Assembly: GCA_964187785.1 (NCBI GenBank)
Contig: OZ076416.1
Span: 19,964,001 to 20,028,000 of the forward strand
DNA: 64,000 bases
From: Amphiscolops sp. MND2022
Lineage: Eukaryota
Direction: 5' to 3'
The notes beneath the pieces are model-generated. The model was not told the DNA's origin, ran no database searches, and was given only the letters and a program-made list of their open reading frames with translations. A program made the position numbers and the translations under genes. Below, in pieces: positions 7,431-51,310 of this stretch. The stretch's first letter is position 1. Every line of letters begins with the position of its first letter.

Positions 7431-8087
7431 CTGAAAAATATTCTGACATTGTGTTCAGCAGTGAGCATATGCGTTAGATTCGAATTTCTAAAGCTACCGA
7501 CGACATTAGGCGAGAGCCCGACACCGCATTAATTGTTCGTTTGATATCGTTGTTCAGGTCAAGCTTTGTGTTGTTCGCTTTAACCTTAACTTGGCCAATG
7601 TGCCAAATTTGGCACATTTATTTTCTGCAAATTCTAAACGCACCAGCTGATTGTATGGTAAAGCAAACTCTTGAATAAGATTTTCAGACAATATTGCAAA
7701 GCATTCGGCGCCTTTTCACGGAATATTGACGTGATGTCTCCGAAATCACGAAAATGAGACAAAAAATTCAAAAAAAATAACTGCAGATTTTCCATTTTCA
7801 CATTTTTCGTTTCTGGCCCTTTTAACCCACTGGTGTCAACATTGGGTCAAAGCGGCCTCGGAATGTTTTGAAACATGCTGAAAAGCAAGCAGAGACACGA
7901 CGCAAGCAAAGTTTTGGCGCAAAGTCCGGACCCAGCCCAGCAGTTTAAAAATTGATTTGAAAGCACTGATGCTCCTCTTTTGAACGCTGTATAAATTGTT
8001 TTTCGGACTTGAATAGTTCAGGAGATATTGCGGTTTAAAGTTCAAACACCCGATTTTTGGATGGAACAAGAATTTTCCTGGCCAACT

Positions 8088-8232
8088 AGTAGTCATAAAA
8101 GTAGGAACCCTGGGTCACTTTTGCTCCGTTTTCGTGAATGTGAACTAATTTATACGGGGGGATTACCGTGAAATTAAGACTGTTGGTGTGGGATATAACC
8201 TTGAAATTCAGACTGGTTTAAATGGGTGTGGC
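8088..8232 (+). repeat. Left terminal inverted repeat (145 bp)
   Basis: Matches the reverse complement of 51045-51194 except for two G-run lengths (G6 vs G10, G3 vs G4). Confidence 0.95.
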
Positions 8233-8929
8233 TTTATTACTCGCGTCGTGGGCTTTTATGTGTACAGTGCCATTTTTTATTTTTACCACTTGCGCTGGGG
8301 CGAATTCTCAAGTGGTTCTTGTTTAAAAATCGTAAAGGTTTGACTTGTGTGTCAATAAAGAGGGTGCGCCGCGTCTTCTCAATATTTTCAATATCAAAGA
8401 AGTTATTATCGAGTGACTTCAAGAGCTTGGTTAAATAATTGAGTCAAGATGTTAACTAACGGCGAGAAATTCGTTTCTGAGGTTAATTTGGAATATAATT
8501 TTGAGAAACACTCAATCCATGAAAGGAGGTTTCTGGGTTTCAAAGAGATCTGTAAGTCGCTTCCGCATAAAAAGATAACGTAATTTTTCGCTTCGAGGGA
8601 CTGCCTTCAGACTCTTGTGATGGTGAAAATAAAGTGTTAACTCAATCCACGCGGGGACATAAATTCGAGAGTAATCGTGACATCGCCACCACTTTCGGTT
8701 AAAGTAAATAAAAGTAGATCCTTTTCATGAATCTCTACAGCTATTATAGTGAAGAATTTCTTCAAGTATAGTGAAAACCACTTCAAGTTATGGAATTGCA
8801 TCTGAATTCTTTGGTAAAATGTATAACAATTAATACTGTTTCCACCCTAGCACTCCCTTAATATGAGTTTTAGCAAACATTTCCGTACTTCAAATACTAT
8901 GATTTATGGAGTTGTGATTAAATGATACG

Positions 8930-10301
8930 GGAAGCTACACTCCAGGAGTTGATTGTTTCAATATATGTTCAAAAGCCAAGTGAAAACTTCAGGTTGTTAT
9001 ATCTAGTTATTACAAGAAGTGATATGTATACTTTTTCATTAACAACAAAATTACAGGTATCTTATTATATACCAACGAACAGACAGTGACAATTTCAAAG
9101 AATGCCTCGAACAATTTATGAGTAACTTTTGGATTCCAGTGGTGGTTAATTGATGTTTCTGAATTGTTTCCAAACAAAACAGGTAATTTGAAAGAACGAT
9201 TTTTTTTAAAATCTAATATTTCATTAAATTTCAACATGTTTAAGGTGCAAAACTTAAATGGACTATGGTGGAAAATGTAACAACAGGACAACCAATAAAC
9301 CCTCTTTATACAGCGTATTTGTTTCCGATAATGACGGTTTTGCTGACGAGTTGAAAGAATTGAGTGATCTAATTGCAATAATCTGTCAGAAGTTATGGAC
9401 TTTGTTGTATGAATAATCAAAGATGGAATGTTTCAAATTTGAAATGAATACCCAAGAATACTAACAAAAGAAATTATTCACAGTTTGTTATTGAAGGTTA
9501 TAGAAATTGATGATATCTGAGAGAATATTACAAGTTGTGCTTGATTGAAAGAAAAGACTAACACTGAAATATGGCCAATAGAAAGGTGTTGTCTAACAAA
9601 TATTCCAGTCATTGTAATTTTTCCCCTATACCATTTCAAGAAAGCCAACCAACTATCAGATTCACTTTATTGTTACCTAGACCGTTCTTCTTCTTCGGAA
9701 AATCCGGTTTTATTTCAAAATCTTCGAAACGCTTCAAAATGACGTTTACAAGCAACAACACAAAACTGTTTGGTCAATACCTAGTTCAAGACGAGATGGT
9801 AATGGTGGAGGGAAATATCGATGGTGGTTTAACAAGGAAGACCACACTTTTGGAAGTAAAAGAAACTATAGAAGCAACGACTATTGACTCAGATATCAAG
9901 TAAGTAAAAAACTCGATTTTTTAAACTGTTTCAAGTATCTCACCCAAGTCGCAATTTGTCTTTTACATATGTTGTTTCAGGTACTACATAATTTTTTTAT
10001 ATGGATCCTGCAGTTTTTATTCCCGATACTTTCAAGAAATTGCCAGAAAATCGAATAGTGGAGCCTTCGTTTGGACAAACGTTTTTTCTCATCCGCCCCT
10101 CCTGTTAAAGCAAAATTCGATTTTGTTGTCCCAAGATTGAACTCATCAACGACAGTAACCCCAATCCAATATTATGTGGATGGAGACAACTTACAAGGAC
10201 ACGAACAAGCTCTTTGGAGCCTATGTTTCCAGTTGGTAGAGAGTGTAAAAAGTGAATATGGAATAATCATCTATGCCATGAAGCTTGCCCTAATTACTTG
10301 A
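8930..10301 (+). pseudogene. Intron-containing gene remnant(s) in the left arm, unknown product
   Basis: Candidate introns at 9183-9244 (GTAATT...TTTAAG, in phase: NKT-G-AKLKW) and 9900-9980 (GTAAGT...TTTCAG, at the end of the 110-aa ORF 9571-9903). Downstream exons need frameshifts in T runs. Confidence 0.35.
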
Positions 10302-10967
10302 ACTCCTTGAGCGTTTCCTAAAGCATGTGTTAGATGCTTCGAAAAAATGAATCAAAAGTCTATGCCTTTGATTGGTTTTAGTGTAATAAAGCTTTCGTTC
10401 CAATTCAATCGTGAAACAAAGTGTTGAAATTCAATAATTTATGATTTATAACTAACGAAGGTATGTTGTCAATGACTTTGTTTATAACCTTCACGAGCAA
10501 ATCATGAAACTAATCAATCAAGACTCAATATTTGAATTGAATATCGCTTCTATTTCGTTTTCTATTTCAAAAGAAGATTACTTTCCTGAGGTTAAAGAAC
10601 TTCCGACAACCATCAGCAGATAGAAAATGAATGAATTGATAAATAACTCCTACAGAAGAAGTTAACGAAAACGAAAGACCTAAATTGCTGTAAAAGAATA
10701 ATATCATCAAGAAGCTCAGAATTAAAAAGAATAAGATAGATTGAAGAATAAGTTATGAGCAGAGAAGCTGGAAAACAGTTTCTAGATTCTCAGTTTTGCA
10801 TTCATAAGCATTCCATGTAGCACAGTTAAACCGTCAAACCGACAAGTAATTCTTCAGTGCATTGAAAAAGTGCATCATTTGTTTTGGAACAATTTTTACT
10901 CTCACTAATTGATAAGTTAATAACGTTCTTTTTCAGAAAATCTTCAACTCATTCAAGGAGAATTAAG

Positions 10968-10968
<1 letters not shown>

Positions 10969-11020
<52 letters not shown>
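10969..11020. repeat. (CT)n microsatellite abutting an ATG; also at 15352-15380, 16427-16496, 18838-18850, 23030-23045
   Basis: Directly visible; each run ends at ATGATGCAC of the repeated ORF. Confidence 0.95.
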
Positions 11021-11350: not shown

Positions 11351-11404
11351 AGAAAGTACGCCTGAAATATATGACCTACTGAAACAGCACTTCCATACGA
11401 TTCA

Positions 11405-11909: not shown

Positions 11910-12120
11910 AGCATGTGTTGTTTTGAACAGGAACAAGAAAGTCAAAATTTTTGTCAAAATTCAACAAGAAATTAATTACCATTAATTACAATAAAATATT
12001 GCATGGTTATGTCAGGTTAATAAACAAACATATTCACAAAATGTACAATTCACCGACAGAATTTGAGTAAAGATCGAAGGCATGTTAATATGTGGCGGCA
12101 TAAGATTAAAGATATATAAA

Positions 12121-15237: not shown

Positions 15238-16422
15238 AGTGCATTGAAAAAGTGCATCATTTGTTTTGGAACAATTTTTACTCTCACTAATTGATAAGTT
15301 AATAAAGTTCTTTTTCAGAAAATCTTCAACTCATTCAAGGAGAATTAAGTCTTCTCTCTCTCTCTCTCTGTCTCTCTCTCATGATGCACATTTTCGCAGC
15401 CAGCTCCCTGCACCGAGCAATTCAAACGCTTCCTGACGGTGTGAAAAAAAGACTGTCATTTTTGACAGTTATCCCATGTCTCCATCCCAATGAAAATTCA
15501 GCGCAAAACTTTCGTAAAGCAGTTCAATTTCAAATCAAACTCCTACAGAAGAAGTCGAAGAAAATTCCAGAAGTTGTCATTTGGAATGATGCCATCAATA
15601 ATACTCTTACTCCCCATTCTTCTAACTTCTACAGCCCGCTGATCCCAAGTCAGTTGATCGCGGAGATCCAAAAACCTCCAGTCGTCATCAAGGCAGTAGT
15701 ATATTGCTAAAGAAAGTACGTCTGAAATATATGACCTACTGAAACAGCACTTCCAGACGATTCACATGACTAAATTAACCAAGCGTAAGATGGTATAACT
15801 TAAGGTTAGAATTACGAGGGTATCTAGTCCTTGTTCTTGATTGATCAATGATTTATATAAAAAAGACTTAGTGTGGCTTTTACGTGAAAATGAGATGAAA
15901 GATTCAGCTCGGAAATCAGTACACGTTCACCGATATCGAAACTATGTTCATCGACGCCACGAACGGAGAAATTGCTGGTCTAGCGCGATACATGAGTCAA
16001 AATTCTTGTCAAAATTCAACAAGAAATTAATTACCAATAATTATAATAAAATATTGCATGGTTATGTTATGTTAATAAACATACATATTCACAAAATGTA
16101 CAATTCACCGACAGAATTTGAGTAAAGATCAAAGAAGTTCAGAAAAAAGAAGAACAAGATAGACTGAGTAAGTTATGAGCAAGGACCGTCCTAGAGACGA
16201 CCGGAGCAGGACATCCAAGACTCCTAAAACAACGGGCTTTGTGATCGGCAGCGGTCTTTGTGATCGGCAGAGGACTTGAAGTGCCCAGATTACAACCTAA
16301 ATCAACGATATAGGCATTGAAAAAGTGCATCATTTGCTTTAGAACAATTTGTACTCTCACTAATTGATAAGTTAATAACGTTCTTTTCCAGAAAATCTTC
16401 AACTCATTCAAGGAGAATTAAG

Positions 16423-16474
<52 letters not shown>

Positions 16475-17564
16475 CTCTCTGTCTCTCTCTCTCTCATGAT
16501 GCACATTTTCGCAGCCAGCTCCCTGCACCGAGCAATTCAAACGCTTCCTGACGGTGTGAAAAAAGACGGTCTTTTTTGACAGTTATCACAGGTCTCCATC
16601 CCAATGAAAATTCAGCGCAAAACTTTCGTAAAGCAGTTCAATTCAAATCAAACTCCTACAGAAGAAAATTTAAGAAGTTGTCATTTGGCATGATGCCATC
16701 AATACTCTTACTCCCCATTCTTCTAACTTCTACAGCCCGCTGATCCCAAGTCAGTTGATCGCGGAGATCCAAAAACTGCCAGGCGTCATCAAGGCAGTAG
16801 TATATTATGACTAAATTGACCAAGCGTAATATGGTATATTTTAAGGTTAGAATTATGAAGTTATCTAGTCTTCGTTCTTGATTGATAAATATTTTATAAA
16901 AAAGACTTAGTGTGGTTTTTACGTGAAAATGAGATGAATGATTTAGCTCGGAAATCAGTACTTGTTCACCGATATCAAAACGATGTTCATCGATGCCAAT
17001 ATATCATCCAACTATTATAACCTCTTGGACATCCAGCAACTGATTTTGGAACTCCAAAAACTTCCAGTGAAAATTAAGGCAATCGTTTACTGCCAGAGAG
17101 AAGGCGCCTGTGACATCTTCATTAAATGAATAGTTACTATTGGACGATATGTTGGGTAACAGCTGTGGCGGCTGTGACTCGTCCATAGAATCTCTTTAAT
17201 AAGTTTATCAATCGCACCAGAGAGGCCAGATCTTCCAGACAGAGTTCCATAATGGACAGGTTTCGCAAAATCTCCACCTCCCGCGTGATGATGACGTCAA
17301 ATGTAGTACCAACACACTTCTCATTTTTCCGTTGCGAGGTCAATTTCTTTGAAACAAAGAACAAATAACAGAACTGATGAAGGTGTAGCATCACCAGCAA
17401 CATGATAATGTATTCGTAGTAACAAAAGTTTTGGTAATACCATTTTATAGAATCAAAATCAATTGTGTCATGTGAGATGAAAATAAATAAAAAATTGAAA
17501 TAACTAAAAAAATAATTAATGAAGCATTTTTTCATCCTGTTTAGGGACGATTTAGCTATGTTAA

Positions 17565-17670
17565 ACATTTTTATAATACACGTATAAACTACTGCAAACG
17601 ATGTGGCGCTACTGCTATTGTATTTCTAGCACCACTCCCGGTAGGAGAGGGTGGTATACCTTGGCTTGTC
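17565..17670 (-). promoter_or_regulatory. Candidate promoter cassette (TACGTGTATTATAAA...ATG); copies at ~21765-21862, 25802-25890 and a diverged one at ~37163-37258
   Basis: A ~100-bp block with a TATAAA motif lies immediately 5' of the ATG of the 143-aa ORF (17568) and of a dissimilar ORF (37149). Confidence 0.4.
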
Positions 17671-20576
17671 TTTTTTCACTCTGCAAGAGTTGGGTCCAAA
17701 TATAAAAGAGCGCCAAATTGCTGTAAAAGAATAATATCATCAAGAAGCTCAGAATGAAAAAGAATAAGCTAGATTGAAGAATAAGTTATGAGTAAAGAAG
17801 CTGGAAAACAGTTTCTAGATTCTCAGTTTTGCATTCATAAGCATTCCATGTAGCACAGTTAAACCGTCAATCCGACAAGTAATTCTTCAGAACTTCCGAC
17901 AACCATCAGCAGATAGAAAATGAATGAATTGATAAATAACTCCTACAGAAGAAGTTAACGAAAACGAAAGACCTAAATTGCTGTAAAAGAATAATATCAT
18001 CAAGAAGCTCAGAATGAAAAAGAATAGGATAGATTGAAGAATAAGTTATGAGCCAAGAAGCTGGAAAACAGTTTCTAGATTCTCAGTTTTGCATTCATAA
18101 GCATTCCATGTAGCACAGTTAAACCGTCAATCCGACAAGTAATTCTTGTCATTATAAAGTAAATCATTATATTTCTAGTCGTTGAAGCATGTGTTGTTTT
18201 GAACAGGAACAAGAAAGTCAAAATTCTTGTCAAAATTCAACAAGAAATAAATTACCATTAATTACAATAAAATATTGCATGGTTATGTCATGTTAATAAA
18301 CAAACATATTCACAAAATGTACAATTCACCGACAGAATTTGAGTAAAGATCGAAGGCATGTTAATATGTGGCGGCATAAGATTAAAGATGTATTAAAAAT
18401 GTTTTATATAAATATTATTCTGATTGACAAAATTGGTGGTCATGCATAAAAACTTGAGCCACCAAAACATCCTCATGAGTTTTATCTTTGATTATGGCGG
18501 CCTTTTCCGTAAAAAAACACAAATTGCTGTAAAACAAATTCATCAAGAAGCTCAAAATAAAGAAGAACAAGATAGACTGAGTAAGTTATGAGCAAGGTTC
18601 GTCCTAGAGACGACCGGAGCAGGACATCCAAGACCCCTAAAACAACGGTCTTTGTGATCGACAGCGGTCTTTGTGATCGGCAGAGGACTTGAAGTGCCCA
18701 AATTACAACTTAAATCAACGGTATAGGCATTGAAAAAGTACATCATTCGCTTTAGAACAATTTTTACTCTCACTAATTGATAAGTTAATAACGTTCTTTT
18801 CCAGAAAATCTTAAACTCATCCAAGGAGAATTAAGTCTTCTCTCTCTCTCATGATGCACATTTTCGCAGCCAGCTCCCTGCACCGAGCAATTCAAACGCT
18901 TCCTGGCGGTGTGAAAAAAGACTGTCATTTTTGACAGTTATCCCATATCTCCATCCCAATGAAAATTCAGCGCAAAACTTTCGTAAAGCAGTTCAATTTC
19001 AAATCAAACTCCTACAGAAGAAGTCGAAGAAATAATTCCAGAATTTGTCATTTGGAATGATGCCATCAAGCCCAGCGCGTTGATTCAGGCTGTAATTAGG
19101 ACACTTCAAGTCCTTTGCCAATCACAAAGACCGATGCCGTCATACCTTTTTTTAGACCCAAAAGCGTGCATCAAAACAATGCTATAGGACGATTTTTCTC
19201 AGGCCTTATTTTGCTGAATTACTGGAACTTTTGGCAGTGAAAATGTTCTAAAGCATATGCTGCACTTTTTCATTGCCTATCGCTGATTTAAGCTGTAATT
19301 AGGACACTTCAAGTCCTCTGCTGTTTTTGGTGTCTTGAATATCCTGCTCCGGCTGTCTCTAGGCGTTCTCTGTTTCTGCAGCACCGTCCGAAAATCGCTT
19401 CACTATAAGTTGGTCCCAATTGCACCCATTTTCGTCAATTACTACGGTTACAGCTTACGTGGTGTGATTTTAGCGCCTCTGCAACCACTAGAAAACATTT
19501 TAGACCCCCAAAAGCGTACATCAAAACAATGCTATAGGACGATTTTTCTCAGGCCTTATTTTGCTGAATTACTGGAAACTTTTGGCAGTGAAAATGTTCT
19601 AAAGCATATGGTGCACTTTTTCATTGCCTATCGCTGATTTAAGCTGTAATTAGGACACTTCAAGTCCTCTGCTGTTTTTGGGGTGCTGAACATCCTGCTC
19701 CGGCTGTCTCTAGGCGTTCCTGGTTTCTCTAGCATCGTCCGAAAATTGCTTTACTAAAAGTTGGTCCCAATAATACTCTTACTCCCCATTCTTCTAACTT
19801 CTACAGCCCGCTGATCCCAAGTCAGTTGATCGCGGAGATCCTAAAACTTCCAGTCGTCATCAAGGCAGTAGTATATTGCTAGAGAAAGTACGCCTGAAAT
19901 ATATGACCTACTGAAACAGCACTTCCATACGATTCACATGACTAAATTAACCAAGCGTAAGATGGTATAATTTAAGGTTAGAATTACGAGGGTATCTAGT
20001 CCTTGTTCTTGATTGATAAATGATTTATATAAAAAAGACTTAGTGTGGCTTTTACGTGAAAATGAGATGAAAGATTCAGCTCGGAAATCAGTATACGTTC
20101 ACCGATATCGAAACTATGTTCATCGACGCCACGAACGGAGAAATTGCTGGTCTAGCGCGATACATGAGTCAAAATTCTTGTCAAAATTCAACAAGAAATT
20201 AATTACCATTAATTACAATAAAATATTGCATGGTTATGTTATGTTAATAAACATACATATTCACAAAATGTACAATTCACCGACAGAATTTGAGTAAAGA
20301 TCAAAGAAGTTCAGAATAAAGAAGAACAAGATAGACTGAGTAAGTTATGAGCAAGGACCGTCCTAGAGACGACCGGAGCAGGACATCCAAGACCCCTAAA
20401 ACAACGGGCTTTGTGATCGGCAGCGGTCTTTGTGATCGGCAGAGGACTTGAAGTGCCCAGATTACAACCTAAATCAACGCTATAGGCATTGAAAAAGTGC
20501 ATCATTTGCTTTAGAACAATTTGTACTCTCACTAATTGATAAGTTAATAACGTTCTTTTCCAGAAAATCTTCAACT

Positions 20577-20706
20577 NNNNNNNNNNNNNNNNNNNNNNNN
20601 NNNNNNNNNNNNNNNNNNNNNNNNNNNNNNNNNNNNNNNNNNNNNNNNNNNNNNNNNNNNNNNNNNNNNNNNNNNNNNNNNNNNNNNNNNNNNNNNNNNN
20701 NNNNNN
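20577..20706. other. Assembly gap (130 N)
   Basis: N run at the position occupied by the (CT)n tract in the first unit. Confidence 1.
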
Positions 20707-23700
20707 GCAGCCAGCTCCCTGCACCGAGCAATTCAAACGCTTCCTGACGGTGTGAAAAAAGACGGTCTTTTTTGACAGTTATCACAGGTCTCCATCCCAA
20801 TGAAAATTCAGCGCAAAACTTTCGTAAAGCAGTTCAATTCAAATCAAACTCCTACAGAAGAAAATTTAAGAAGTTGTCATTTGGCATGATGCCATCAATA
20901 CTCTTACTCCCCATTCTTCTAACTTCTACAGCCCGCTGATCCCAAGTCAGTTGATCGCGGAGATCCAAAAACTGCCAGGCGTCATCAAGGCAGTAGTATA
21001 TTATGACTAAATTGACCAAGCGTAATATGGTATAATTTAAGGTTAGAAGTATGAGGTTATCTAGTCTTCGCTCTTGATTGATAAATAATTTATAAAAAAG
21101 ACTTAGTGTGGTTTTTACGTGAAAATGAGATGAATGATTTAGCTCGGAAATCAGTACTTGTTCACCGATATCAAAACGATGTTCATCGACGCCAATATAT
21201 CATCCAACTATTATAACTCCTTGGACATCCAGCAACTGATTTTGGAACTCCAAAAACTTCCAGTGAAAATTAAGGCAATCGTTTACTGCCAGAGAGAAGG
21301 CGCCTGTGACATCTTCATTAAATGAATAGTTACTATTGGACGATATGTTGGGTAACAGCTGTGGCGGCTGTGACTCGTCCATAGAATCTCTTTAATAAGT
21401 TTATCAATCGCACCAGAGAGGCCAGATCTTCCAGACAGAGTTCCATAATGGACAGGTTTCGCAAAATCTCCACCTCCCGCGTGATGATGACGTCAAATGT
21501 AGTACCAACACACTTCTCATTTTTCCGTTGCGAGGTCAATTTCTTTGAAACAAAGAACAAATAACAGAACTGATGAAGGTGTAGCATCCCCAGCAACATG
21601 ATAATGTATTCGTAGAAACAAAAGTTTTGGTAATACCATTTTATAGAATCAAAATCAATTGTGTCATGTGAGATGAAAATAAATAAAAAATTAAAATAAC
21701 TAAAAAAATAATTAATGAAGCATTTTTTCATCCTGTTTAGGGACGATTTAGCTATGTTAAACATTTTTATAATACACGTATAAACTACTGCAAACGATGT
21801 GGCGCTACTGCTATTGTATTTCTAGCACCACTCCGGGTAGGAGAGGGTGGTATACCTTGGCTTGTCTTTTTTCACTCTGCAAGAGTTGGGTCCAAATATA
21901 AAAGAGAGCGCCAAATTGCTGTAAAAGAATAATATCATCAAGAAGCTCAGAATGAAAAAGAAGAGGCTAGATTGAAGAAAAAGTTATGAGCAAAGAAGCT
22001 GGAAAACAGTTTCTAGATTCTCAGTTTTGCATTCATAAGCATTCCATGTAGCACAGTTAAACCGTCAATCCGACAAGTTATTCTTCAGAACTTCCGACAA
22101 CCATCAGCAGATAGAAAATGAATGAATTGATAAATAACTCCTACAGAAGAAGTTAACGAAAACGAAAGACCTAAATTGCTGTAAAAGAATAATATCAAGA
22201 AGCTCAGAATGAAAAAGAATAAGATAGATTGAAGAATAAGTTATGAGCAAAGAAGCTGGAAAACAGTTTCTAGATTCTGTTTTGCATTCACAAGCATTCC
22301 ATGTAGCACAGTTAAACCGTCAATCCGACAAGTAATTCTTGTCATTATAAAGTAAATCATTATATTTCTAGTCGTTGAAGCATGTGTTGTTTTGAACAGG
22401 AACAAGAAAGTCAAAATTCTTGTCAAAATTCAACAAGAAATAAATTACCATTAATTACAATAAAATATTGCATGGTTATGTCATGTTAATAAACAAACAT
22501 ATTCACAAAATGTACAATTCACCGACAGAATTTGAGTAAAGATCGAAGGTATGTTAATATGTGGCGGCATAAGATTAAAGATGTATTAAAAATGTTTTAT
22601 ATAAATATTATTCTGATTGACAAAATTGGTGGTCCTGCATAAAAAATTGAGCCACCAAAACATCCTCATGAGTTTTATCTTTGATTATGGCGGCCTTTTC
22701 CGTAAAAAAACACAAATTGCTGTAAAACAAATTCATCAAGAAGCTCAAAATAAAGAAGAACAAGATAGACTGAGTAAGTTATGAGCAAGGTTCGTCCTAG
22801 AGACGACCGGAGCAGGACATCCAAGACCCCTAAAACAACGGTCTTTGTGATCGACAGCGGTCTTTGTGATCGGCAGAGGACTTGAAGTGCCCATATTACA
22901 ACCTAAATCAACGCTATAGGCATTGAAAAAGTGCATCATTTGCTTTAGAACAATTTGTACTCTCACTAATTGATAAGTTAATAACGTTCTTTTCCAGAAA
23001 ATCTTAAACTCATCCAAGGAGAATTAAGTCTTCTCTCTCTCTCTCATGATGCACATTTTCGCAGCCAGCTCCCTGCACCGAGCAATTCAAACGCTTCCTG
23101 GCGGTGTGAAAAAAAGACTGTCATTTTTGACAGTTATCCCATATCTCCATCCCAATGAAAATTCAGCGCAAAACTTTCGTAAAACAGTGCAATTTCAAAT
23201 CAAACTCCTACAGAAGAAATCGAAGAAATAATTCCAGAAGTTGTCATTTGGAATGATGCCATCAAGCCCAGCGCGTTGATTCAGGCTGTAACTAGGACAC
23301 TTCAAGTCCTTTGCCAATCACAAAGGCCGATGCCGTTTTTGGTGTCTTGAATATCCTGCTCCGGCTGTCTCTAGGCGTTCTCTGTTTCTGCAGCACCGTC
23401 CGAAAATCGCTTCACTATAAGTTGGTCCCAATTACACCCATTTTCGTCAATTACTACGGTTACAGCTTACGTGGTGTGATTTTATCGCCTCTGCAACCAC
23501 TAGAAAACATTTTAGACCCAAAAGCGTGCATCAAAACAATGCTATAGGACGATTTTTCTCAGGCCTTATTTTGCTGAATTACTGGAACTTTTGGCAGTGA
23601 AAATGTTCTAAAGCATATGCTGCACTTTTTCATTGCCTATCGCTGATTTAAGCTGTAATTAGGACACTTCAAGTCCTCTGCTGTTTTTGGGGTGCTGAAC

Positions 23701-24566
23701 ATCCTGCTCCGGCTGTCTCTAGGCGTTCCTGGTTTCTCTAGCATCGTCCGAAAATTGCTTTACTAAAAGTTGGTCCCAATAATACTCTTACTCCCCATTC
23801 TTCTAACTTCTACAGCCCGCTGATCCCAAGTCAGTTGATCGCGGAGATCCAAAAACTTCCAGTCGTCATCAAGGCAGTAGTATATTGCTAGAGAAAGTAC
23901 GCCTGAAATATATGACCTACTGAAACAGCACTTCCATACGATTCACATGACTAAATTAACCAAGCGTAAGATGGTATAATTTATCGTTAGAATTACGAGG
24001 GTATCTAGTCCTTGTTCTTGATTGATAAATGATTTATATAAAAAAGACTTAGTGTGGCTTTTACGTGAAAATGAGATGAAAGATTCAGCTCGGAAATCAG
24101 TATACGTTCACCGATATCGAAACTATGTTCATCGACGCCACGAACGGAGAAATTGTTGGTCTAGCGCAATACATGAGTCAAAATTCTTGTCAAAATTCAA
24201 CAAGAAATTAATTACCATTAATTACAATAAAATATTGCATGGTTATGTTATGTTAATAAACATACATATTCACAAAATGTACAATTCACCGACAGAATTT
24301 GAGTAAAGATCAAAGAAGTTCAGAAAAAAGAAGAACAAGATAGACTGAGTAAGTTATGAGCAAGGACCGTCCTAGAGACGACCGAAGCAGGACATCCAAG
24401 ACCCCTAAAACAACGGTCTTTGTGATCGGCAGAGGACTTGAAGTGCCCAGATTACAACCTAAATCAACGCTATAGGCATTGAAAAAGTGCATCATTTGCT
24501 TTAGAACAATTTGTACTCTCACTAATTGATAAGTTAATAACGTTCTTTTCCAGAAAATCTTCAACC

Positions 24567-24739
24567 NNNNNNNNNNNNNNNNNNNNNNNNNNNNNNNNNN
24601 NNNNNNNNNNNNNNNNNNNNNNNNNNNNNNNNNNNNNNNNNNNNNNNNNNNNNNNNNNNNNNNNNNNNNNNNNNNNNNNNNNNNNNNNNNNNNNNNNNNN
24701 NNNNNNNNNNNNNNNNNNNNNNNNNNNNNNNNNNNNNNN
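24567..24739. other. Assembly gap (173 N)
   Basis: N run at the equivalent (CT)n position. Confidence 1.
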
Positions 24740-26536
24740 TTCGCAGCCAGCTCCCTGCACCGAGCAATTCAAACGCTTCCTGACGGTGTGAAAAAAGACG
24801 GTCTTTTTTGACAGTTATCACAGGTCTCCATCCCAATGAAAATTCAGCGCAAAACTTTCGTAAAACAGTTCAATTCAAATCAAACTCCTACAGAAGAAAA
24901 TTTAAGAAGTTGTCATTTGGCATGATGCCATCAATACTCTTACTCCCCATTCTTCTAACTTCTACAGCCCGCTGATCCCAAGTCAGTTGATCGCGGAGAT
25001 CCAAAAACTGCCAGGCGTCATCAAGGCAGTAGTATATTATGACTAAATTGACCAAGCGTAATATGGTATAATTTAAGGTTAGAATTATGAGGTTATCTAG
25101 TCTTCGTTCTTGATTGATAAATAATTTATAAAAAAGACTTAGTGTGGTTTTTACGTGAAAATGAGATGAATGATTTAGCTCGGAAATCAGTACTTGTTCA
25201 CCGATATCAAAACGATGTTCATCGACGCCAATATATCATCCAACTATTATAACCCCTTGGACATCCAGCAACTGATTTTGGAACTCCCAAAACTTCCAGT
25301 GAAAACTAAGGCAATCGTTTACTGCCAGAGAGAAGGCGCCTGTGACATCTTCATTAAATGAATAGTTACTATTGGACGATATGTTGGGTAACAGCTGTCG
25401 CGGCTGTGACTCGTCCATAGAATCTCTTTAATAAGTTTATCAATCGCACCAGAGAGGCCAGATCTTCCAGACAGAGTTCCATAATGGACAGGTTTCGCAA
25501 AATCTCCACCTCCCGCGTGATGATGACGTCAAATGTAGTACCAACACACTTCTCATTTTTCCGTTGCGAGGTCAATTTCTTTGAAACAAAGAACAAATAA
25601 CAGAACTGATGAAGGTGTAGCATCACCAGCAACATGATAATGTATTCGTAGAAACAAAAGTTTTGGTAATACCATTTTATAGAATCAAAATCAATTGTGT
25701 CATGTGAGATGAAAATAAATAAAAAACTGAAATAACTAAAAAAAATAATTAATGAAGCATTTTTTCATCCTGTTTAGGGACGATTTAGCTATGTTAAACA
25801 TTTTTATAATACACGTATAAACTACTGCAAACGATGTGGCGCTACTGCTATTGTATTTCTAGCACCACTCCGGGTAGGAGAGGGTGGTATACCTTGGCTT
25901 GTCTTTTTTCACTCTGCAAGAGTTGGGTCCAAATATAAAAGAGAGCGCCAAATTGCTGTAAAAGAATAATATCATCAAGAAGCTCAGAATGAAAAAGAAT
26001 AGGCTAGATTGAAGAATAAGTTATGAGCAAAGAAGCTGGAAAACAGTTTCTAGATTCTCAGTTTTGCATTCATAAGCATTCCATGTAGCACAGTTAAACT
26101 GTCAATCCGACAAGTAATTCTTCAGAACTTCCGACAACCATCAGCAGATAGAAAATGAATGAATTGATAAATAACTCCTACAGAAGAAGTTAACGAAAAC
26201 GAAAGACCTAAATTGCTGTAAAAGAATAATATCATCAAGAAGCTCAGAATGAAAAAGAATAAGATAGATTGAAGAATAAGCTATGAGCAAAGAAGCTGGA
26301 AAAGTTTCTAGATTCTCAGTTTTGCATTCATAAGCATTCCATGTAGCACAGTTAAACCGTCAATCCGACAAGTAATTTTCAGAGCTTCCGACAACCATCA
26401 GCAGATAGAAAATGAATGAATTGATGAATAACTCCTACAGAAGAAGTTAACGAAAACGAAAAGACCTGAAGTTGTCATCTGTCACGACGTTTTGAATTCA
26501 CTTCAGGGTTGTTATCGTGTAACGTTTTAGAGATGA

Positions 26537-27136
26537 AAGCAGGAGCCAGGCCATTCAAAGGCTCACAGCCAAAAAAGCAAGAAGCAACAAAAATTTCGAT
26601 CGTCACTGTTTCAAAACGACGATCGTGAATTGGTAAGAGAAGGAACTCTCCGAAAGAACAATTACAATAAAGAAGCTCTCCAAGATCTGCTGCAGTGGCT
26701 ACTTTTCAATGACCGCGACAAGCGCCAAAACGATTTCCCCAGTTATGACGTTTTAAAAAACTGGGTCCGTCATTTAAAACGTGTCTTGGGTGTAAATTTT
26801 GATTTCAACAGCAATCGGCACCGAAAAAGAATGTGTTCATCATTTGACCACAAAGTGTCGGAACCAAGTCATGTGCGGGCAATTGACGAGGACCTTGGCC
26901 ACAGCAGAGAAGATTCGTATGAGGAGTTTTCGTGGAGAAAAGAACATATCATTTTTCGTAAAAACATTCGTAGGAGCCCCCACGCATCCTTAGACCACTT
27001 GATATCAATCTTAGCCACCGACTTGGTACCTGACAAATATCTTCGTGAACGCGGAGATGAGTACTGGTCGTTTCGATGCCAGATAAAACACTTGCGAAAA
27101 TGGGCTAAACCTGGATACCCCAATTTTCGTTACTGA
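26537..27136 (+). CDS. Tyrosine-recombinase-like C-terminal catalytic region, 5'-truncated
   Basis: 200-codon stop-free frame containing LF...LKNWVRHLKRVLGVNFDFNSNRHRKRMCS...IDEDLGHSREDSYEEF, resembling the YR helix-G-x(n)-HxxR...LGH...Y arrangement. The expected Tyr position is Phe, with a Tyr three residues earlier. Confidence 0.45.
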   Translation, partial: KQEPGHSKAHSQKSKKQQKFRSSLFQNDDRELVREGTLRKNNYNKEALQDLLQWLLFNDRDKRQNDFPSYDVLKNWVRHLKRVLGVNFDFNSNRHRKRMCSSFDHKVSEPSHVRAIDEDLGHSREDSYEEFSWRKEHIIFRKNIRRSPHASLDHLISILATDLVPDKYLRERGDEYWSFRCQIKHLRKWAKPGYPNFRY

Positions 27137-30760: not shown

Positions 30761-32129
30761 TCTGATTCAAGAAAAACAAAGTGGCGTCGTCCAGACTGGT
30801 CGATTTTATTGGGGAGTCTTTTTGCCTCACAAACTACCCTCGTCTTTTCAGACCAATGTCTTTCCGGATTCGCTAAACAGCACTCTCTGTGTTGCAAAAT
30901 TATGTCGGGACGATGAATGGTCTGAAATAATTGCAAAATATGGGTGACGCGAATCAAGATTTTTTTCAATCTCAACCAGCAAAATAAAAATACTGATTGA
31001 GACGTTAGTCCGTTATTCAGGTCCCCCACATAATTTGAATTATCAATGTACGAGAATGAAGACAATCCAAATAAATGTTGACGACTACAAAGGAAAACAA
31101 TTCATCAAGTGGAAAAACCAGCATGAAATCAAAATAAATTCATAATCGATAGTGTTTCAAACCAAAACAAAAAAGGTTCTATATTCAACGAACCATTGTT
31201 TCTTCAAGGAAAACAAAGTGGCGACGTCCATGAAAAAGGCCCAGAAACTGCTGTTAAACAAATTCAAGAAGCTCAGAATAAAGAGATAGACTGAATAAGT
31301 AGGTAAGTTTCGTTCAGAACTGCTCTCTGAGATCCAACTTTGAGCTTTTAAACTCACATGAGCTAATTTGCTAATTTTGCTTGATAAAAATTTTTCTTCG
31401 AGGAAAACGTTGCTACAGGTCCCCACTGAAACGCCAAGTTTGGAAAGAAAAAATCCAATTTTTATTTTGCATAGCTATTCAAGGTTGCCGAGACATAGGG
31501 AAGATTTGATATTTTTAATGAGAAATCAACTTTTGACTTTTTTATTGTTTCTCAAGTGACGAAGGGAAGTTTTCTGATCAAAAGCTCCGAACTGTTCTGA
31601 AATCTGTAAAGCAACCACTCCTGATGACCCCCTAGTTGTCTTTTTCTTATTTATAATTATAAAAATAGGCCCCTCCGGGGCTCAGTACTATTTCTGCTTT
31701 AATCTTTATTTTTTTAAAACAAAAAATCATTAATAAAAGAATCATATCTGGAATACCAATACACTCCTGTTTAATCATTACTTAGAGCACAATTAATCAC
31801 TGTACAAGTTTACACCGCCTTTAATTCTTCTCGGACTAAAGAAAATATAACTAAGCGTAGACGAAGTTTCGCATTCGCATTTGAATGCAGGCGAAGCTCT
31901 CAACGAACGAATAATTAACACTCATTCGCTTCATCTCAATGACGTCAGCATACGAATGGATAATTACCACTCGCTCGTTCTATCGCACTAGAATTGAATT
32001 GTTGTCGGCAGCTTTCCCACGCTTACACTCACTGCCGAACAAAATATCTGAATTATTCAGTAGGACGAAATTTGACGACTGAAAAAAAAAAGGACCAACT
32101 TTGAGGTTACAATAACATTCCTGCTAAAG

Positions 32130-32950
32130 CAGAAATATTAATAAAACAATAAGAAACAGTAATAAATTGTAAAAATCGTACTTTCTGTAAAACATTAGTG
32201 TCATGAGGGAGCTCAGAATGAAAAAGAACAAAATAGCATCCCCGAAAGAACTTATGTCACATAATATTTAGGACATCTACATATGTAAACACATGATGTC
32301 AGAGCAAAAAGCTTAACTAGCACACAAATGAAACATACTTGAGAATTGGAATCAAAAGCATCAATAATTAGTGAAAAAAAACTTCAAAGGTAACTTCTTT
32401 AAAAAAACAAGTAAATTTGGAATCAGTATGATAATACATGCACATATCACGTCACATTTTGACTTACATCTAATAATGCTTGAATCGAAATCGATCATAA
32501 GATTGTTAATCAGATGCGAAAACCAAGTAATAATTATTACAAGTACGTTATCAATTATTGATAATAGTAAAAAGAAAAAACCATTCAATAAAAAAGAAAA
32601 ACAAAACTAATTGAATGCTTAAATGAATGATCACGGGGTGATAAGAAAATGGAGCACCGAAAAAGGATTGTCGGATGAAGCACCGAAGAGCTCTCTCAAA
32701 TGAAGCACAAAAATGGATTGTCATGTATCTAGGACGGCCTACCCTCTTACACGATTGCGCCTATTGATGATTCTTCAATAGGGTGACTGCGGCGTAGATC
32801 TTTGAATTCCCTAAAGCAACCACTCCTGAGGACCTCCTAGTTGTCTTTTTCTTATTTATAATTATAATAAAACAATAAGAAACAATAATAAATTGTAATA
32901 ATCGTACTTTCTGTAAAACATTAGTACCATGAGGAAGCTCAGAATGAAAA
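32130..32950. repeat. Block duplicated at ~40540-41220
   Basis: ORFs 32371 and 40831 share IIHAHITS...KKKPF; the flanking sequence is colinear. Confidence 0.8.
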
Positions 32951-35894: not shown

Positions 35895-36266
35895 TTTCAC
35901 GATAAGAAAGCTGAAAACTGCCCTTCCATCCCTAAAAGCTTAAATCCCTAGAATGCTCAAAAGTCACGTAGTCTATCAAATAAAGTGTCCTGGATGCCAA
36001 TCCAGCTACGTCGGGCAAACTACACGCCACCTGTCTACGAGGATTAGAGAGCACTCGAGGAAATCTAGTAATGTGGGAGAACACCTGTCTCACTGTGGGG
36101 TGGCACTGACAGAAGATAATGTGAAGATAATGTGGAGATAATAGACAGCAGCAGCAGCAGCTACAGCAAACTTTTGACCTTAGAGGCCCTTCACATATCA
36201 AAAGAGAAGCCTAAAATCAACACAAAGGAAGAATACAGATCACGCGAACTTACCTTGAGGGTCTAA
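35895..36266 (+). mobile_element. Penelope-like retroelement 3' fragment (GIY-YIG endonuclease)
   Basis: KSHVVYQIKCPGCQSSYVGQTTRHLSTRIREH followed by LLTLEALHI...KPKINTKEEYRSRELTLRV*, the typical PLE GIY-YIG C-terminus; internal stop and frameshift. Confidence 0.85.
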
Positions 36267-45420: not shown

Positions 45421-45763
45421 CAATTGAAAATGCGGGAGCCAGAAAACAACTTTATGAGATCCAATTGAAAATGCGGGAGCCAGAAAACAACTTTATGAGA
45501 TCCAATTGAAAATGCGGGAGCCAGAAAACAACTTTATGAGATCCAATTGAAAATGCGGGAGCCAGAAAACAACTTTATGAGATCCAATTGAAAATGCTGC
45601 TTTTTTTGATGATGCACTGATGAAATTTGTTTAATTTTTGCTATTTTTCAGATTTTCTTGATAATGTCAACAGAAGTTGACGAAACGTCGAATTTATGAA
45701 GTTTTTATTCTGCCACTCTTTTCTCATAAAGTTGTTTTCTGGCTCCCGCATTTTCAATTGGAT
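45421..45763. repeat. 41-bp minisatellite (4.3 copies, 45421-45597) with one inverted copy at 45722-45763; MITE-like
   Basis: caattgaaaatgcgggagccagaaaacaactttatgagatc at 45421, 45462, 45503 and 45544; its reverse complement follows ~125 bp after the array. Confidence 0.85.
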
Positions 45764-47119
45764 ACTTGTTCCACCACGAAATTTCAAAAATTTTCAAATT
45801 GAAACCATGGAAATAAAGTAAAAGCTAATTTATTTACCTTGATTCAACCGTGGAGAAGTAGAGTGCATAAGGATTGCATTCAACCATTCCAAATCAAAAG
45901 CAACCGAACAATAAAAAAAACATCGACAGTCAGCCTGCTATTTAATACGTTACATAATTCTACTATTTGGTGCTTTGAGTATTGCGGAAAGGTCCGTTTT
46001 CCACAAAAAAAGTAATCTCTGATTTGCCTCCAAAAGTAATAACTGAAAGATGAAGCAACACTCACATTGGTATATTCTCTTCATTGCAACAGTACAGTCA
46101 AAATTCAGTTAAAATTCATACACTAGTGCCTCGCGCGCAACTTCAAGGTTGACAATAAAAAAACAATCCTGTCTATTCCTGTCTATACCAACAAACAATG
46201 CATAGACATTGTCAAAAACGCCCATGATGGAGCAAAGCATGAAATTGATGACGTTTATCGGATGCAGTACTTGATTGTTCGCAATTGAGATTATGTTCGT
46301 CTGTTCCAAAAATGAATATCATCAGTCAAACTGCTGTCTATTACAAAATTTCAATAATTAATAACCTCTCCTGCTAATGTTGCGAAGTGTCTTCAAATGA
46401 AGAGTTTGAGTTCCACGTCACATAGTGAAGAGCTGGGAGCTAATTCAAGTGGGAAAAAGTTGAAAGATATTGAGTAGTAGTCTGTTACTACTCAACAGAA
46501 CAAGTTCAACCTGTACAGCTGAAAAGTCTGGTTTTACTCGATATCTGTTCACTTTTAGGAAGTTTCGTCTAGAAAATCAAAGATGAGGTTGAAAAACATC
46601 AATAATCACAGTGGTATCTATTCCAACGCGAAAATGCAACAATCTGCATAAGTTGGTAATTGAGGATAAAGTAAAAACAAAGCTAAGTACACTAATTGAT
46701 CTCAAAAGTTTTCCGGAATCAAGTTGCAGATGCTGAAAACACCAACAATCAAATTGATTCAATTGAAATACGAAATTGAAACAATACCTGAGATAGAAAA
46801 CTCGACATAATTCACTCCAACGCAATACAACAATTATTACAGCGAGATATTAGCATCACATCCTGGAGAGGGAGGGCTGAATTTTTCTAGTTGAAGTACA
46901 ATTCAACAGAAACCAGACAGAGGACTACTCGTTCCTGTAGAGCGAAGGGTCCTTGAATTCTTTGTATAGTCCATCGAATTTCGAAACGACAGTTGTACAA
47001 TAAGTCCTAGAAATTTTGAAACGGAAACAAGAAGACTGTAAGAAGCTCCAAAAAAAGAGCTAAAGTATACAGGTCGTATTACTTTGAAAATACGACCTTG
47101 GCTGTATTCTCGTTTATTA

Positions 47120-48995
47120 AGTGTCTACCGGAGTCTCTTTGGTTAATCTCAACCCAACCATGGAGAGTAGAATTTGCTCAATCTACCTGCTCCAAGAGAG
47201 GTTAACCAATACTAAGACCCCAGTAGACACTCGTACTGTGCAGGCTGGGTTAGGCCCGTCTTACCCAGTACATTGTGTCTACATCATGGGAGTAGTGAAA
47301 TTACCAAATAGCAAATGAGAGGAAGACAAAATTTGCACAAGGAATCGGAAGAAAAATCGACAAAAACGGAAGTATACTAAACAAAACCATTTTATGCGAC
47401 AAAGACAAACTATTCACCAAAATGTCACAAATAAACAATATTTTTTTCAATCGAACTTAGAAGATCCCTTAAAATATTACTCAAAACATTTGAAAAACAA
47501 AAATGGTGAATATAATCAACAATTTTTCAAACCGACAGAACTTATCCCCTATGGAAGTACACTAAAGTAAGCCATTTTGAGTTAAAGACATTTAAAAAGC
47601 AAAAATGCTGGATATAATCAACAATTTTTCAAACCGACAGAAGTTGTCCCCATGAAAGTACACTAAAGTAAGTCATTTTGAGAGTTAAAGACAAATGAAA
47701 CACTAAAATGCTGGACATAATCAACAATTTTTCAAACCGACAGAACTTATCCCCTATGGAAGTACAACAGGACACATGATTTCAAAGAAACAATTTTCAA
47801 AATCTCAAGCTCTCCACTACGAAAAAAGAAGACATTCCATGCCACGTAGAGAAATTGCATAATTTACATGTGATACCGCCATATAGTCTGTGTAGAGGTA
47901 TTTAAACTGAAGAGGAAGAAAAGTAAAGATTTGAATCGAATCGAATCGAATCAGTACTTGTGCAGGAGATTTCGAGTGCCTACTGGAGTCTTTGATTAAC
48001 CTCAACCCGTTTCTTGAAGAGTAGAGCACTAACGGTCTACCTGCTCCAAGAGAGGTTAACCAATACTAAGACCCAGTAGACACTCGTACTGTGCAGGCTG
48101 GGTTAGGCCCGTCTTACCCAGTACATTGTGCCTACATCATGGGAGTAGTGAAATTACCAAATAGCAAATGAGAGGAAGACAAAATTTGCACAAGGAATCG
48201 GAAGAAAAATCGACAAAAACGGAAGTATACTAAACAAAACCATTTTATGCGACAAAGACAAACTATTCACCAAAATGTCACAAATAAACAATATTTTTTT
48301 CAATCGAACTTAGAAGATCCCTTAAAATATTATTCAAAACATTTAAAAAACAAAAATGGTGGATATAATCAACAATTTTTCAAACCGACAGAACTTATCC
48401 CCTATGGAAGTACACTAAAGTAAGCCATTTTGAGTTAAAGACATTTAAAAAGCAAAAATGCTGGATATAATCAACAATTTTTCAAACCGACAGAAGTTGT
48501 CCCCATGAAAGTACACTAAAGTAAGTCATTTTGAGAGTTAAAGACAAATAAAACACTAAAATGCTGGACATAATCAACAATTTTTCAAACCGACAGAACT
48601 TATCCCCTATGGAAGTACAACAGGACATATGATTTCAAAGAAACAATTTTCAAAATCTCAAGCTCTCCACTACCAAAAAAAGACATTCCATGCCACGTAG
48701 AGAAATTGCATAATTTACATGTGATACCGCCATATAGTCTGTGTAGAGGTATTTAAACTGAAGAGGAAGAAAAGTAAAGATTTGAATCGAATCGAATCGA
48801 ATCAGTACTTGTGCAGGAGATTTCGAGTGCCTACTGGAGTCTTTGATTAACCTCAACCCGTTTCTTGAAGAGTAGAGCACTAACAGTCTACCTGCTCCAA
48901 GAGAGGTTAACCAATACTAAGACCCAGTAGACACTCGTACTGTGCAGGCTGGGTTAGGCCCGTCTTACCCAGTACATTGTGTCTACTCTATGGGA
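47120..48995. repeat. ~852-bp tandem duplication (2.2 copies) with an internal ~100-bp triplet and a SINE-like block ending in (GATTC)4 on the minus strand
   Basis: ctacctgctccaag at 47183, 48037 and 48888; gaatcgaatcgaatc at ~47933 and ~48784. Confidence 0.85.
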
Positions 48996-49080
48996 GCTTT
49001 TTTTTTAAAAAAAAAAGGTGAACATTTCGATAAATTAATGAAATACAAAGAACAAAACTTTAGCTCACTAAGCTGAAAGC

Positions 49081-50045
49081 AAAGACGAGTTAAAGAAATA
49101 ATATAGCTCTAAAATGACGGAAATTTAGACCAAATTGTCAATTGGACAGAGGTTACCCAAGGTATGTTGCACTGGAATGCTGCCATTTTTACTCAAAGAC
49201 AAGTTAAAGAAATATTATAGCTCTAAAATGACGGAAATTTAGACCAAATTTTCAATTGGACAGAGGTTACCCAAGGTATGTTGCACTGGAATGCTGCCAT
49301 TTTTACTCAAAGACAAGTTAAAGAAATATTATAGCTCTAAAATGACGGAAACTTAGACCAAATTGTCAATTGGACAGAGGTTACCCAAGGTATGTTGCAC
49401 TGGAATGCTACCATTTTTACTCAAAGACAAGTTAAAGAAATATTATAGCTCTAAAATGACGGAAATTTAGACCAAATTGTCAATTGGACAGAGGTTACCC
49501 AAGGTATGTTGCACTGTAATGCTGCCATTTTTACTCAAAGACAAGTTAAAGAAATATTAAAGCTCTAAAATGACGGAAATTTAGACCAAATTTCAATTGG
49601 ACAGAGGTTACCCAAGGTATGTTGCACTGGAATGCTACCATTTTTACTCAAAGACAAGTTAAAGAAATATTAAAGCTCTGAAATGACGGAAATTTAGACC
49701 AAATTTTCAATTGGACAGAGGTTACCCAAGGTATGTTGCACTGGAATGCTACCATTTTTACTCAAAGACAAGTTAAAGAAATATTATAGCTCTAAAATGA
49801 CGGAAATTTAGACTAAATTTTGACATAGACAGAGGTTACCCAAGGTATGTTGCACTGGAATGCTACCATTTTTACTCAAAGACAAGTTAAAGAAATACTA
49901 AAGCTCTGAAATGACGGAAATTTAGACCAAATTTTCAATTGGACAGAGGTTACCCAAAGTATGTTGCACTGGAATGCTGCCATTTTTACTCAAAGACAAA
50001 GAAATTTTATAGCTCTATAAATATTATGGAAATTTAGACTTTTAG
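49081..50045. repeat. Tandem array, 114-bp unit, ~8.4 copies
   Basis: aaagac marker at 49081, 49195, 49309, 49423, 49537, 49650, 49764, 49878 and 49992. Confidence 0.95.
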
Positions 50046-50359
50046 ACCAACGTAATTATCAATTAGACTTTCAGTTTTGCGTGTGTGTGGATACGAAATA
50101 TATATTCTGATAAATGTATGCAGGAGATATAGCTCTAAATGCAGTGTTTGCTCAAAGTTTTCTTTGACTTAACTGGAGAGTAGTAGCGTCTCATAGTTGT
50201 CAGGTTCATTGTATTCCTTGACCATTCTTTGATGTTGAACAGTGGCGATGATCTGTAAACATGAAAGTCATTGAAAGCACTGGGAGCAAGGTTTTTCGTA
50301 TTGGTTTTTTTTGGTTACTCTAGTTAATAAATCATGAATTTAGACAAAGCAAATAACCA

Positions 50360-50902
50360 ACCTGTATTAGTTTTGCTTGAGTTGTTGCTGGTTTTTTTTG
50401 GTTGCTGCTTCTTGTCCGTTTCGCTTTCTCATTCATTGTACTGATTGTTGGAATTTTGAATTGGAATAGAAATCACAATAATCTTCGATGTTTGGCTATC
50501 TCTGAAACATTCAGAATCAGGAAATTCAGGATTGAAAAGAATTGGTGTACTTAATTCGTTTCAAAATCACTTGAATTGTGAAGATCGGTCAATTCGCAGA
50601 ATGTCCAGTTTTTTTAAAATAATAAGTTAAACACTTACCAAGCAATTGTTGTTTTTGCTCCAGGTAAAATGGCTGCTGGATTTTCTGGAGTTTTGATCGC
50701 TGTGATTGCTATTTGAAAGTATCTGAAAAATTATCTGCACATGGGCGAAACAACTCTTGGGCTTTTGTGCAATGACATGAAAGCTGTAACAAATTAAATA
50801 AGAAAGAAGCTGTCGACTTGGTTTATATCAAAAGATGAGACCTCACCCAGTTGCCTGACACACAATTCAAGATCACTTGAGAATTGCAAACAATAACCAC
50901 AT
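50360..50902 (-). pseudogene. Possible spliced gene remnant in the right arm, transcribed inward
   Basis: Minus-strand donors GTGAG (50846) and GTAAG (50638) and acceptor TTTTCAG (50723) frame an open 84-bp exon. A hydrophobic start MWLLFAIL lies at 50902. Stops and a frameshift are present. Confidence 0.25.
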
Positions 50903-51044
50903 GAGATTTGTAAACAAAAACCACTTGAAATATTTCCGCGGAGAGCAACTTTACAATCACCATATGCTCGCAGTACATAAAACTAATCAACCATAAAACC
51001 ACCAGCGTCTAGATTTTCCATATTAAGCGCCGTAACTAATGAAT

Positions 51045-51194
51045 GCCACACCCATTTAAACCAGTCTGAATTTCAAGGTTATATCCCCACACCAACAGTC
51101 TTAATTTCACGGTAATCCCCCCCCCCGTATAAATTAGTTCACATTCACGAAAACGGAGCAAAAGTGACCCAGGGTTCCTACTTTTATGACTACT
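51045..51194 (-). repeat. Right terminal inverted repeat (150 bp)
   Basis: Reverse complement of 8088-8232. Confidence 0.95.
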
Positions 51195-51310
51195 CCAACT
51201 TAAGGTTAAATTTCATTCCTGTTTTTAACGAAGCGAATCCTCGAGAACTTTTACCACCGGTTCAGTGTCTCTCGTTGCTTTCCTCTAGTGTGTTTCACTT
51301 GCCTTTGAAA

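Follow-up and report, generated by a model that had tools for sequence, protein, structure and literature searches.

The 64,000-bp stretch of Amphiscolops sp. MND2022 DNA analysed here (GCA_964187785.1, contig OZ076416.1, positions 19,964,001 to 20,028,000; hereafter the window) contains a 43,107-bp element at 8088-51194 that carries the ends and arms of a family of polymerase-bearing transposable elements but has a large body of tandem-repeat DNA in place of the polymerase gene. When the left terminal inverted repeat (TIR) is aligned with the reverse complement of the right one, 145/150 bp match without a single substitution, the two repeats differing by two indels, both within G runs, and both starting with AGTAGT. 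A perfect 6-bp target site duplication (TSD), CCAACT, directly abuts the two ends (the chance of a random 6-bp match being 1/4096). The initial annotation of the window had pointed to precisely these substitution-free TIRs and to this duplication, and both are confirmed. The terminal 31-mer occurs at two sites in the window, namely the two TIRs, with none expected from shuffled sequence, and the terminal 24- to 27-mer of the TIR is absent from IMG/VR and from JGI metagenome contigs. The features of the element are as follows.

8082-8087, unstranded: left TSD copy CCAACT, 6 bp
8088-8232, plus strand: left TIR, 145 bp, starting AGTAGT
8088-10598, plus strand: left arm common to the family, 98.2-98.6% identical to L003-L007, non-coding
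10599-45760, unstranded: replacement segment, 35,162 bp, a mosaic of direct tandem and segmental repeats
15596-26377, plus strand: tandem array with a unit of 4.0-4.2 kb, present about 2.6 times, the units being 98.3-98.6% identical
20577-20706, unstranded: first run of N, 130 N, at a tandem-unit junction
24567-24739, unstranded: second run of N, 173 N, in the same register as the first
31659-32146, plus strand: 488-bp dispersed repeat with an A-rich 3' end
35944-36266, plus strand: fragment of a GIY-YIG endonuclease domain, borderline score
45761-51194, plus strand: right arm common to the family, 98-99%
51045-51194, minus strand: right TIR, 150 bp
51195-51200, unstranded: right TSD copy CCAACT

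Six to seven relatives with the same ends, which we call family A, are present in the ENA assembly ERZ25074608. Entry to the family was provided by an open reading frame (ORF) in the unique left sub-terminal part of the element (9010-9420, minus strand), whose relatives on two further contigs of that assembly are 100% identical; from those loci came a 1160-aa ORF that the window lacks, from this in turn a 56-member 90% cluster with full-length forms of 1266 aa, and from the cluster further loci. Four copies of the family are complete, at 13.5-15.8 kb, and perfect 6-bp TSDs flank three of them.

L006: 15,811 bp, TSD CACGTG/CACGTG, complete copy, polymerase intact
L007: 14,182 bp, TSD AACCTG/AACCTG, complete copy, polymerase intact
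L010: 14,680 bp, TSD AATATT/AATATT, complete copy, polymerase intact
L005 (5843-19297): 13,455 bp, flanking 6 bp do not match, complete copy, polymerase broken once

The 6-bp duplication is therefore a property of the family. Elsewhere in the family, the polymerase gene lies in three pieces in L003 (at least two breaks) and is N-terminally shorter in L004. The contig of L005 carries a coverage label of 208x, against approximately 100x for the contigs of the other copies, which might reflect the collapse of a duplicate or an origin of L005 by recombination of two copies.

The window and these relatives have only two parts in common, 8088-10598 (98.2-98.6% identity) and 45761-51194 (98-99%), and the similarity stops at sharp breakpoints, between 10598 and 10599 on the left and between 45760 and 45761 on the right. 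Between these breakpoints the relatives have 5.64 kb with the polymerase ORF, upstream of which the left arm sits in the full-length copies, whereas the window has the 35,162-bp segment instead. With arms of 2,511 and 5,434 bp at 98-99% identity and a 6-bp TSD, the window element belongs to family A. The right arm has tandem arrays of its own, with a unit of approximately 853 bp at 47182-48996 and one of 114 bp at 49080-49999; their copy number varies between family copies, which explains the length differences among the complete ones. Synonymous divergence (dS) of the polymerase gene between copies of family A is as low as 0.008-0.012, and the family is therefore young and has spread recently.

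Full-length elements contain a single long ORF each, with no other ORF above 136 aa, and the product of the long ORF is a 1266-aa family B DNA polymerase that is protein-primed (pPolB), with a His-Me (Endonuclease VII-like) nuclease insertion. In an alignment of 41 homologues, the columns of Exo I-III, of motifs A, B and C (D-T-D-S, 677-680) and of K-x-Y (K742/Y744; P0123 numbering) are invariant, as is a Cys/His block located between the first two exonuclease motifs, C-x-x-C...H-x-H...H-x-x-C-N (C110, C113, H125, H127, H137, C140 and N141). Homologues at 38% identity match Pfam DNA_pol_B_2 (E 1e-20), Endonuclease_7 and N-terminal C2H2 fingers, whereas P0246 itself matches Endonuclease_7 only, so that the assignment to DNA_pol_B_2 follows from the homologues, the invariant columns and the fold, and not from the Pfam result of P0246. 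Neither the polymerase sequence nor the 41-sequence profile matched any PDB sequence; only fold comparison succeeded. The AlphaFold2 model of P0123 (predicted local distance difference test (pLDDT) 84.9; predicted template modelling (pTM) score 0.84) has phi29 DNA polymerase as its best PDB match (E 6e-19, template modelling (TM) score 0.70), with RNA-primed B polymerases at about 1e-7, and in a viral library it matches the PolBs of adintoviruses, 'MELD virus' and the bidnavirus type with E of 1e-50 to 1e-55 and adenovirus polymerases with 1e-26. A model of the N-terminal 668 aa (pLDDT 76.6) contains no integrase-like or RNase H-like fold and bears a weak likeness (E approximately 1e-3) to the little-finger domain of Y-family polymerases. 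The family A protein is thus a protein-primed PolB of the Polinton/adintovirus kind.

In another assembly (ENA ERZ25066855, ctg1091; L008), a 38%-identical polymerase, P0134, adjoins an rve-chromo integrase, a Pox_A32 ATPase and a double jelly-roll (DJR) capsid gene. Because P0134 sits in this canonical gene set, the type of polymerase found in family A, including its nuclease insertion, is that of complete Polintons. The same locus also bears a phospholipase A2-like ORF, and the 23.5 kb examined there contains no TIR. By contrast, family A retains the polymerase only: the 23 other ORFs of the full-length copies have no Pfam match, and the integrase, ATPase, capsid and other genes of L008 have no tblastn match in the family elements. 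An rve integrase is absent, by ORF, Pfam and tblastn screens, from the window element and from six full-length elements of three families (two of which are described below), and neither the window element nor the relatives have a Pfam match, or a tblastn match to an L008 gene, for a DJR capsid, an A32-type ATPase or an adenain-type protease.

The window element lacks even the polymerase. The longest stop-to-stop ORF of its interior has 199 aa, and a Pfam scan of 105 distinct interior ORFs of at least 60 aa (40 of at least 80 aa and 65 of 60-80 aa) gave no match to pPolB, rve, capsid, A32 ATPase or adenain. Likewise, tblastn with the family polymerase and every gene of the canonical Polinton L008 found nothing inside the element (best E 0.25). 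The view that no Polinton core gene lies inside, which the initial annotation had taken from the sequence alone, is therefore borne out. Rfam and tRNA scans of the window were empty. The longest interior ORF (26537-27133) has six weak or partial relatives among 1.84 billion representatives, none with a Pfam domain, and is treated here as non-coding or decayed. The one notable Pfam result is a GIY-YIG match at 35944-36138 that scores 22.5 bits (E 1.4e-4), just below the cut-off of 22.6, and extends in a second frame to 36266; this fragment is presumably the 3' end of a Penelope-like retroelement.

What fills the interior is repeat DNA: 78% of it is self-repeated, at a median identity of 96.6%, and its high-scoring segment pairs amount to 142.7 kb in direct versus 8.1 kb in inverted orientation. 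The longest interior ORF recurs in part, at 98% identity, on contig ctg185806 of the same assembly, and this revealed a second location of the DNA, L011. Of the 20 kb of L011, 84% corresponds to modules of window 10596-45416 (93-98% identity); the order of the modules differs from that in the window, and no family arms occur within 10 kb on either side. Since its modules recur at L011, the filler is a complex tandem-repeat family of the genome and is not peculiar to the element. The 488-bp repeat at 31659-32146 is 99.4% identical to a private insertion in the left arm of L004 (10199-10686). It is inserted next to A runs, with related pieces at window 2231-2326 and 3046-3143 that flank part of the left neighbour of the element, and may be a short retroposon.

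Both runs of N fall in one register of the 4.0-4.2-kb tandem unit. The 500-bp flanks of each are collinear, at 95-99% identity, with the ungapped junction from 16404 to 16508 of the preceding unit, in which the corresponding points are approximately 103 bp apart. ORFs that cross the runs are mechanical and X-containing only, with no recognisable gene among them. The window lies in contig ctg184212_95x_l (290,418 bp) of ENA ERZ25074608, and a stretch of that public record (L002) spans both runs without any N, its offsets on either side differing by 8 bp; the public record is thus continuous across the runs, whose lengths in the window are estimates.

Together, these results support, with a probability of roughly 0.8, the interpretation of 8088-51194 as one insertion of a young, multi-copy, Polinton-derived TIR family in which the 5.64-kb polymerase segment has been replaced by 35.2 kb of tandem-repeat DNA. 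Under this interpretation, the retained arms and TIRs would act in cis as signals in integration and in protein-primed replication of the ends, and the CCAACT duplication would record one integration by machinery that serves the whole family but is encoded neither by the element nor by its polymerase-bearing relatives. The polymerase would have been supplied in trans and could have come from many intact copies of the family; the most likely source of an rve integrase acting in trans would be a complete Polinton. The initial annotation had proposed an oversized non-autonomous derivative integrated by an autonomous partner. The first half of this proposal stands, in that the element lacks genes and derives from gene-bearing relatives with the same TIRs, with arms at 98-99% identity and with 6-bp TSDs; the second half does not, as the partner found has pPolB only and is no autonomous Polinton.

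Family A is one of three polymerase-only families in ERZ25074608. A family B element (L009, 7086-21747; 14.7 kb) has a polymerase 66% identical to that of family A and starts with AGTAGT; its TIRs are approximately 340 bp long and of lower identity, and it has no matching TSD. The family C element (L012, 7485-21786; 14.3 kb), with a polymerase 73% identical to that of family A, also starts with AGTAGT and has TIRs of approximately 365 bp (97% identical) and a perfect TSD, CATTTG. All three families start with AGTAGT and end with ACTACT, and termini of the form 5'-AG ... CT-3' are reportedly a Polinton trait. Between the families, synonymous differences are saturated (proportion pS 0.74-0.83), the nonsynonymous proportion (pN) is 0.16-0.23 and the ratio of the two rates (dN/dS) is approximately 0.06, so that the polymerase has been kept by selection. 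It is conceivable, although we consider it improbable, that the AGTAGT families form a persistent lineage of Polinton descendants without capsid and integrase that keeps only the polymerase, under strong purifying selection. Such a lineage would integrate with 6-bp TSDs through its own His-Me nuclease, or would be the replicative half of a split system with the integrase and capsid half on other elements, and the 43-kb copy would then be evidence that foreign DNA of more than 35 kb can be enclosed by such ends. The idea of the His-Me insertion as a replacement for the integrase is weakened by the occurrence of the same insertion in the polymerase of a canonical, integrase-bearing Polinton.

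Several other repeats lie outside the element. To its left, 2341-8078 is a separate element of approximately 5.7 kb whose TIRs (2341-2802 and 7607-8078) are approximately 440-460 bp long and 87-92% identical, and a distance of 3 bp separates it from the CCAACT target; eight of its ORFs have no Pfam match, and it contains a 58-bp tandem repeat (3947-4067) with a motif resembling the 41-bp repeat at 45421-45597. To the right, 51846-54063 (plus strand) is a decayed BEL/Pao-type long terminal repeat retrotransposon, a type that points to an animal host; spread over several frames, it retains gag, with DUF1759 matches at E 8e-12 and 2e-9, and a weakly matching aspartic protease. Further on, 55921-56650 (plus strand) is the relic of a different pPolB gene, in at least three frames, with a tblastn match (E 1e-6) to the motif-C region of P0235; it has 1479 homologues of fragment length, one of them with PF03175, and is weakly similar to the family A polymerase. 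A tandem array with a unit of approximately 1.39 kb (87-97% between units; 302-bp sub-repeats) occupies 58370-64000 and runs off the end of the window. Just outside the family A copy L010, a 355-aa ORF (5865-6932, minus strand) is part of a 90% cluster of 189 members, whose full forms reach 492 aa, and represents another abundant repeat.

Two opposite orders of events can be envisioned for the origin of the 43-kb copy. We lean, by a modest degree, to the one in which the insertion was that of a full-length copy, remodelled on site afterwards through break repair or through recombination with a tandem-repeat locus, because the 43-kb form is known from one locus only and because faulty repair at the donor locus is a common origin of internal-deletion derivatives among DNA transposons. 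Conversely, a 43-kb, polymerase-less form could have existed beforehand, elsewhere or as free DNA, and have been replicated and integrated in trans by partner-encoded proteins, a course of events that we rate at somewhat under even odds. Intact and mutually identical TIRs, a perfect TSD and the abundance of equally old partners with the polymerase (the 90% cluster has 56 sequences; dS approximately 0.01) are all consistent with such a true 43-kb transposon, and length alone would be no bar, phi29-type polymerases being highly processive; yet the only other site of the filler, L011, has another module order and no arms within 10 kb, and a single copy is what in-place remodelling predicts. If a capsid were needed, 43 kb would also exceed the usual Polinton size of 13-25 kb (10.1101/2023.08.22.554363). 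Integration in the 43-kb form, as the initial annotation had it, therefore finds no support: its internal junctions turned up in no second copy, and replacement after the insertion is equally possible.

More radical alternatives dispense with a single element or with Polintons. Two truncated elements on different molecules might have been joined in the assembly via a collapsed tandem array, and the self-repetition of 78% of the interior, as well as the two runs of N at repeat-unit junctions, would fit such an artefact. We nevertheless regard it as very unlikely, since the same 6-bp duplication stands on both outer flanks (chance 1/4096), the public record crosses both runs within one contig, free of N there and with coordinates in step within 8 bp, and the junctions of arms and filler lie in unique, non-repeated sequence. 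Still less credible is an origin of the TIRs from a cut-and-paste superfamily with 6-bp TSDs that is unrelated to Polintons (Dada and IS3EU are such superfamilies): a 6-bp TSD and 150-bp TIRs alone are indeed not unique to Polintons, but every gene-bearing relative with these TIRs has pPolB and none a DDE transposase, and the two further families, with pPolBs 66% and 73% identical, also start with AGTAGT. We reject it on these grounds.

Some observations weigh against the interpretation of the 43-kb copy as a remodelled member of family A. A few locus look-ups in ERZ25074608 revealed neither a complete Polinton nor an integrase of the Polinton type, and the supply of an integrase in trans is accordingly a putative step. 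The internal junctions of the window copy are known from no other copy, so that both orders of events are hypothetical. Among the complete relatives, L005 has no matching TSD. Finally, complex tandem arrays are the hardest to assemble, so that the copy number of the 4-kb units, and thus the length of 43 kb, may be inexact.

Non-autonomous relatives of Polintons have rarely been documented, and here three diverged polymerase-only families, with the gene intact and the copies recent, occur in one genome, together with one derivative that lacks even the polymerase and has three times the normal size. The case raises the question of which functions of a polintovirus-like element have to be provided in cis, by the ends, and for which of them (polymerase, integrase and capsid) it can rely on others. 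It also calls for caution in annotation: polymerase matches of this kind do not imply a complete Polinton, and gene-less pairs of TIRs and TSDs can belong to this class. We found no paper on polymerase-only Polinton derivatives or on a satellite-filled one in a literature set that was incomplete and had Repbase outside its search.

Polintons (Mavericks) are 13-25 kb long, with TIRs of 100-1500 bp and TSDs of 5-8 bp (10.1101/2023.08.22.554363), are defined by encoding both pPolB and an rve integrase (PMC5499653), and also have a protease, an ATPase and two capsid proteins in their core (PMC5718144, PMC6431247). Family A resembles them in its long TIRs (145/150 bp in the window copy and 152-158 bp in the other copies, within the Polinton range), in its 6-bp TSD, as the CCAACT of the window element illustrates, and in a pPolB of the same structural clade, for which adintovirus and MELD PolBs are the best viral fold matches and which is 38% identical to a polymerase within the canonical gene set of L008. 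The nuclease insertion also has a counterpart, as an HNH or VSR insertion is known from Polinton pPolB2 (10.1101/2023.08.22.554363). Family A differs in having the polymerase only, without integrase, capsid, ATPase or protease. pPolB is present in L006, L007 and L010 and absent from window 8088-51194, integrase and capsid are absent from both, and the window copy, with no gene at all and 43,107 bp, lies outside the range of 13-25 kb within which its relatives, at 13.5-15.8 kb, fall. The 'Polinton ends' of the initial annotation are therefore the ends of a Polinton-related family, a matter of likeness rather than of membership, as the partners have neither integrase nor capsid.

In their minimal build of TIRs and pPolB, the elements of family A are similar to the linear plasmids and pPolB replicons of mitochondria and cytoplasm (PMC10583447), with a terminal-protein function presumed for the N-terminal part of the polymerase ORF; those replicons are extrachromosomal, whereas family A is integrated, with TSDs, in contigs of nuclear type. 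Casposons and pipolins (PMC4046053, PMC5695915) are likewise mobile elements built around their own family B polymerase, with TIRs and TSDs, but are prokaryotic and bring their own integrase (Cas1 or a tyrosine recombinase), for which family A has no gene. As for the window copy itself, the closest likeness in retained ends, lost coding core and unrelated DNA between sharp breakpoints is to the filler-bearing, internally deleted derivatives of hAT, Mariner and Helitron elements in Anolis (PMC3014272). Unlike those, its parent is self-synthesizing rather than cut-and-paste, its filler consists of 35 kb of tandem-repeat DNA, and the derivative is three times longer than the parent instead of shorter, which shows how tandem-repeat DNA can end up between the ends of a transposon.

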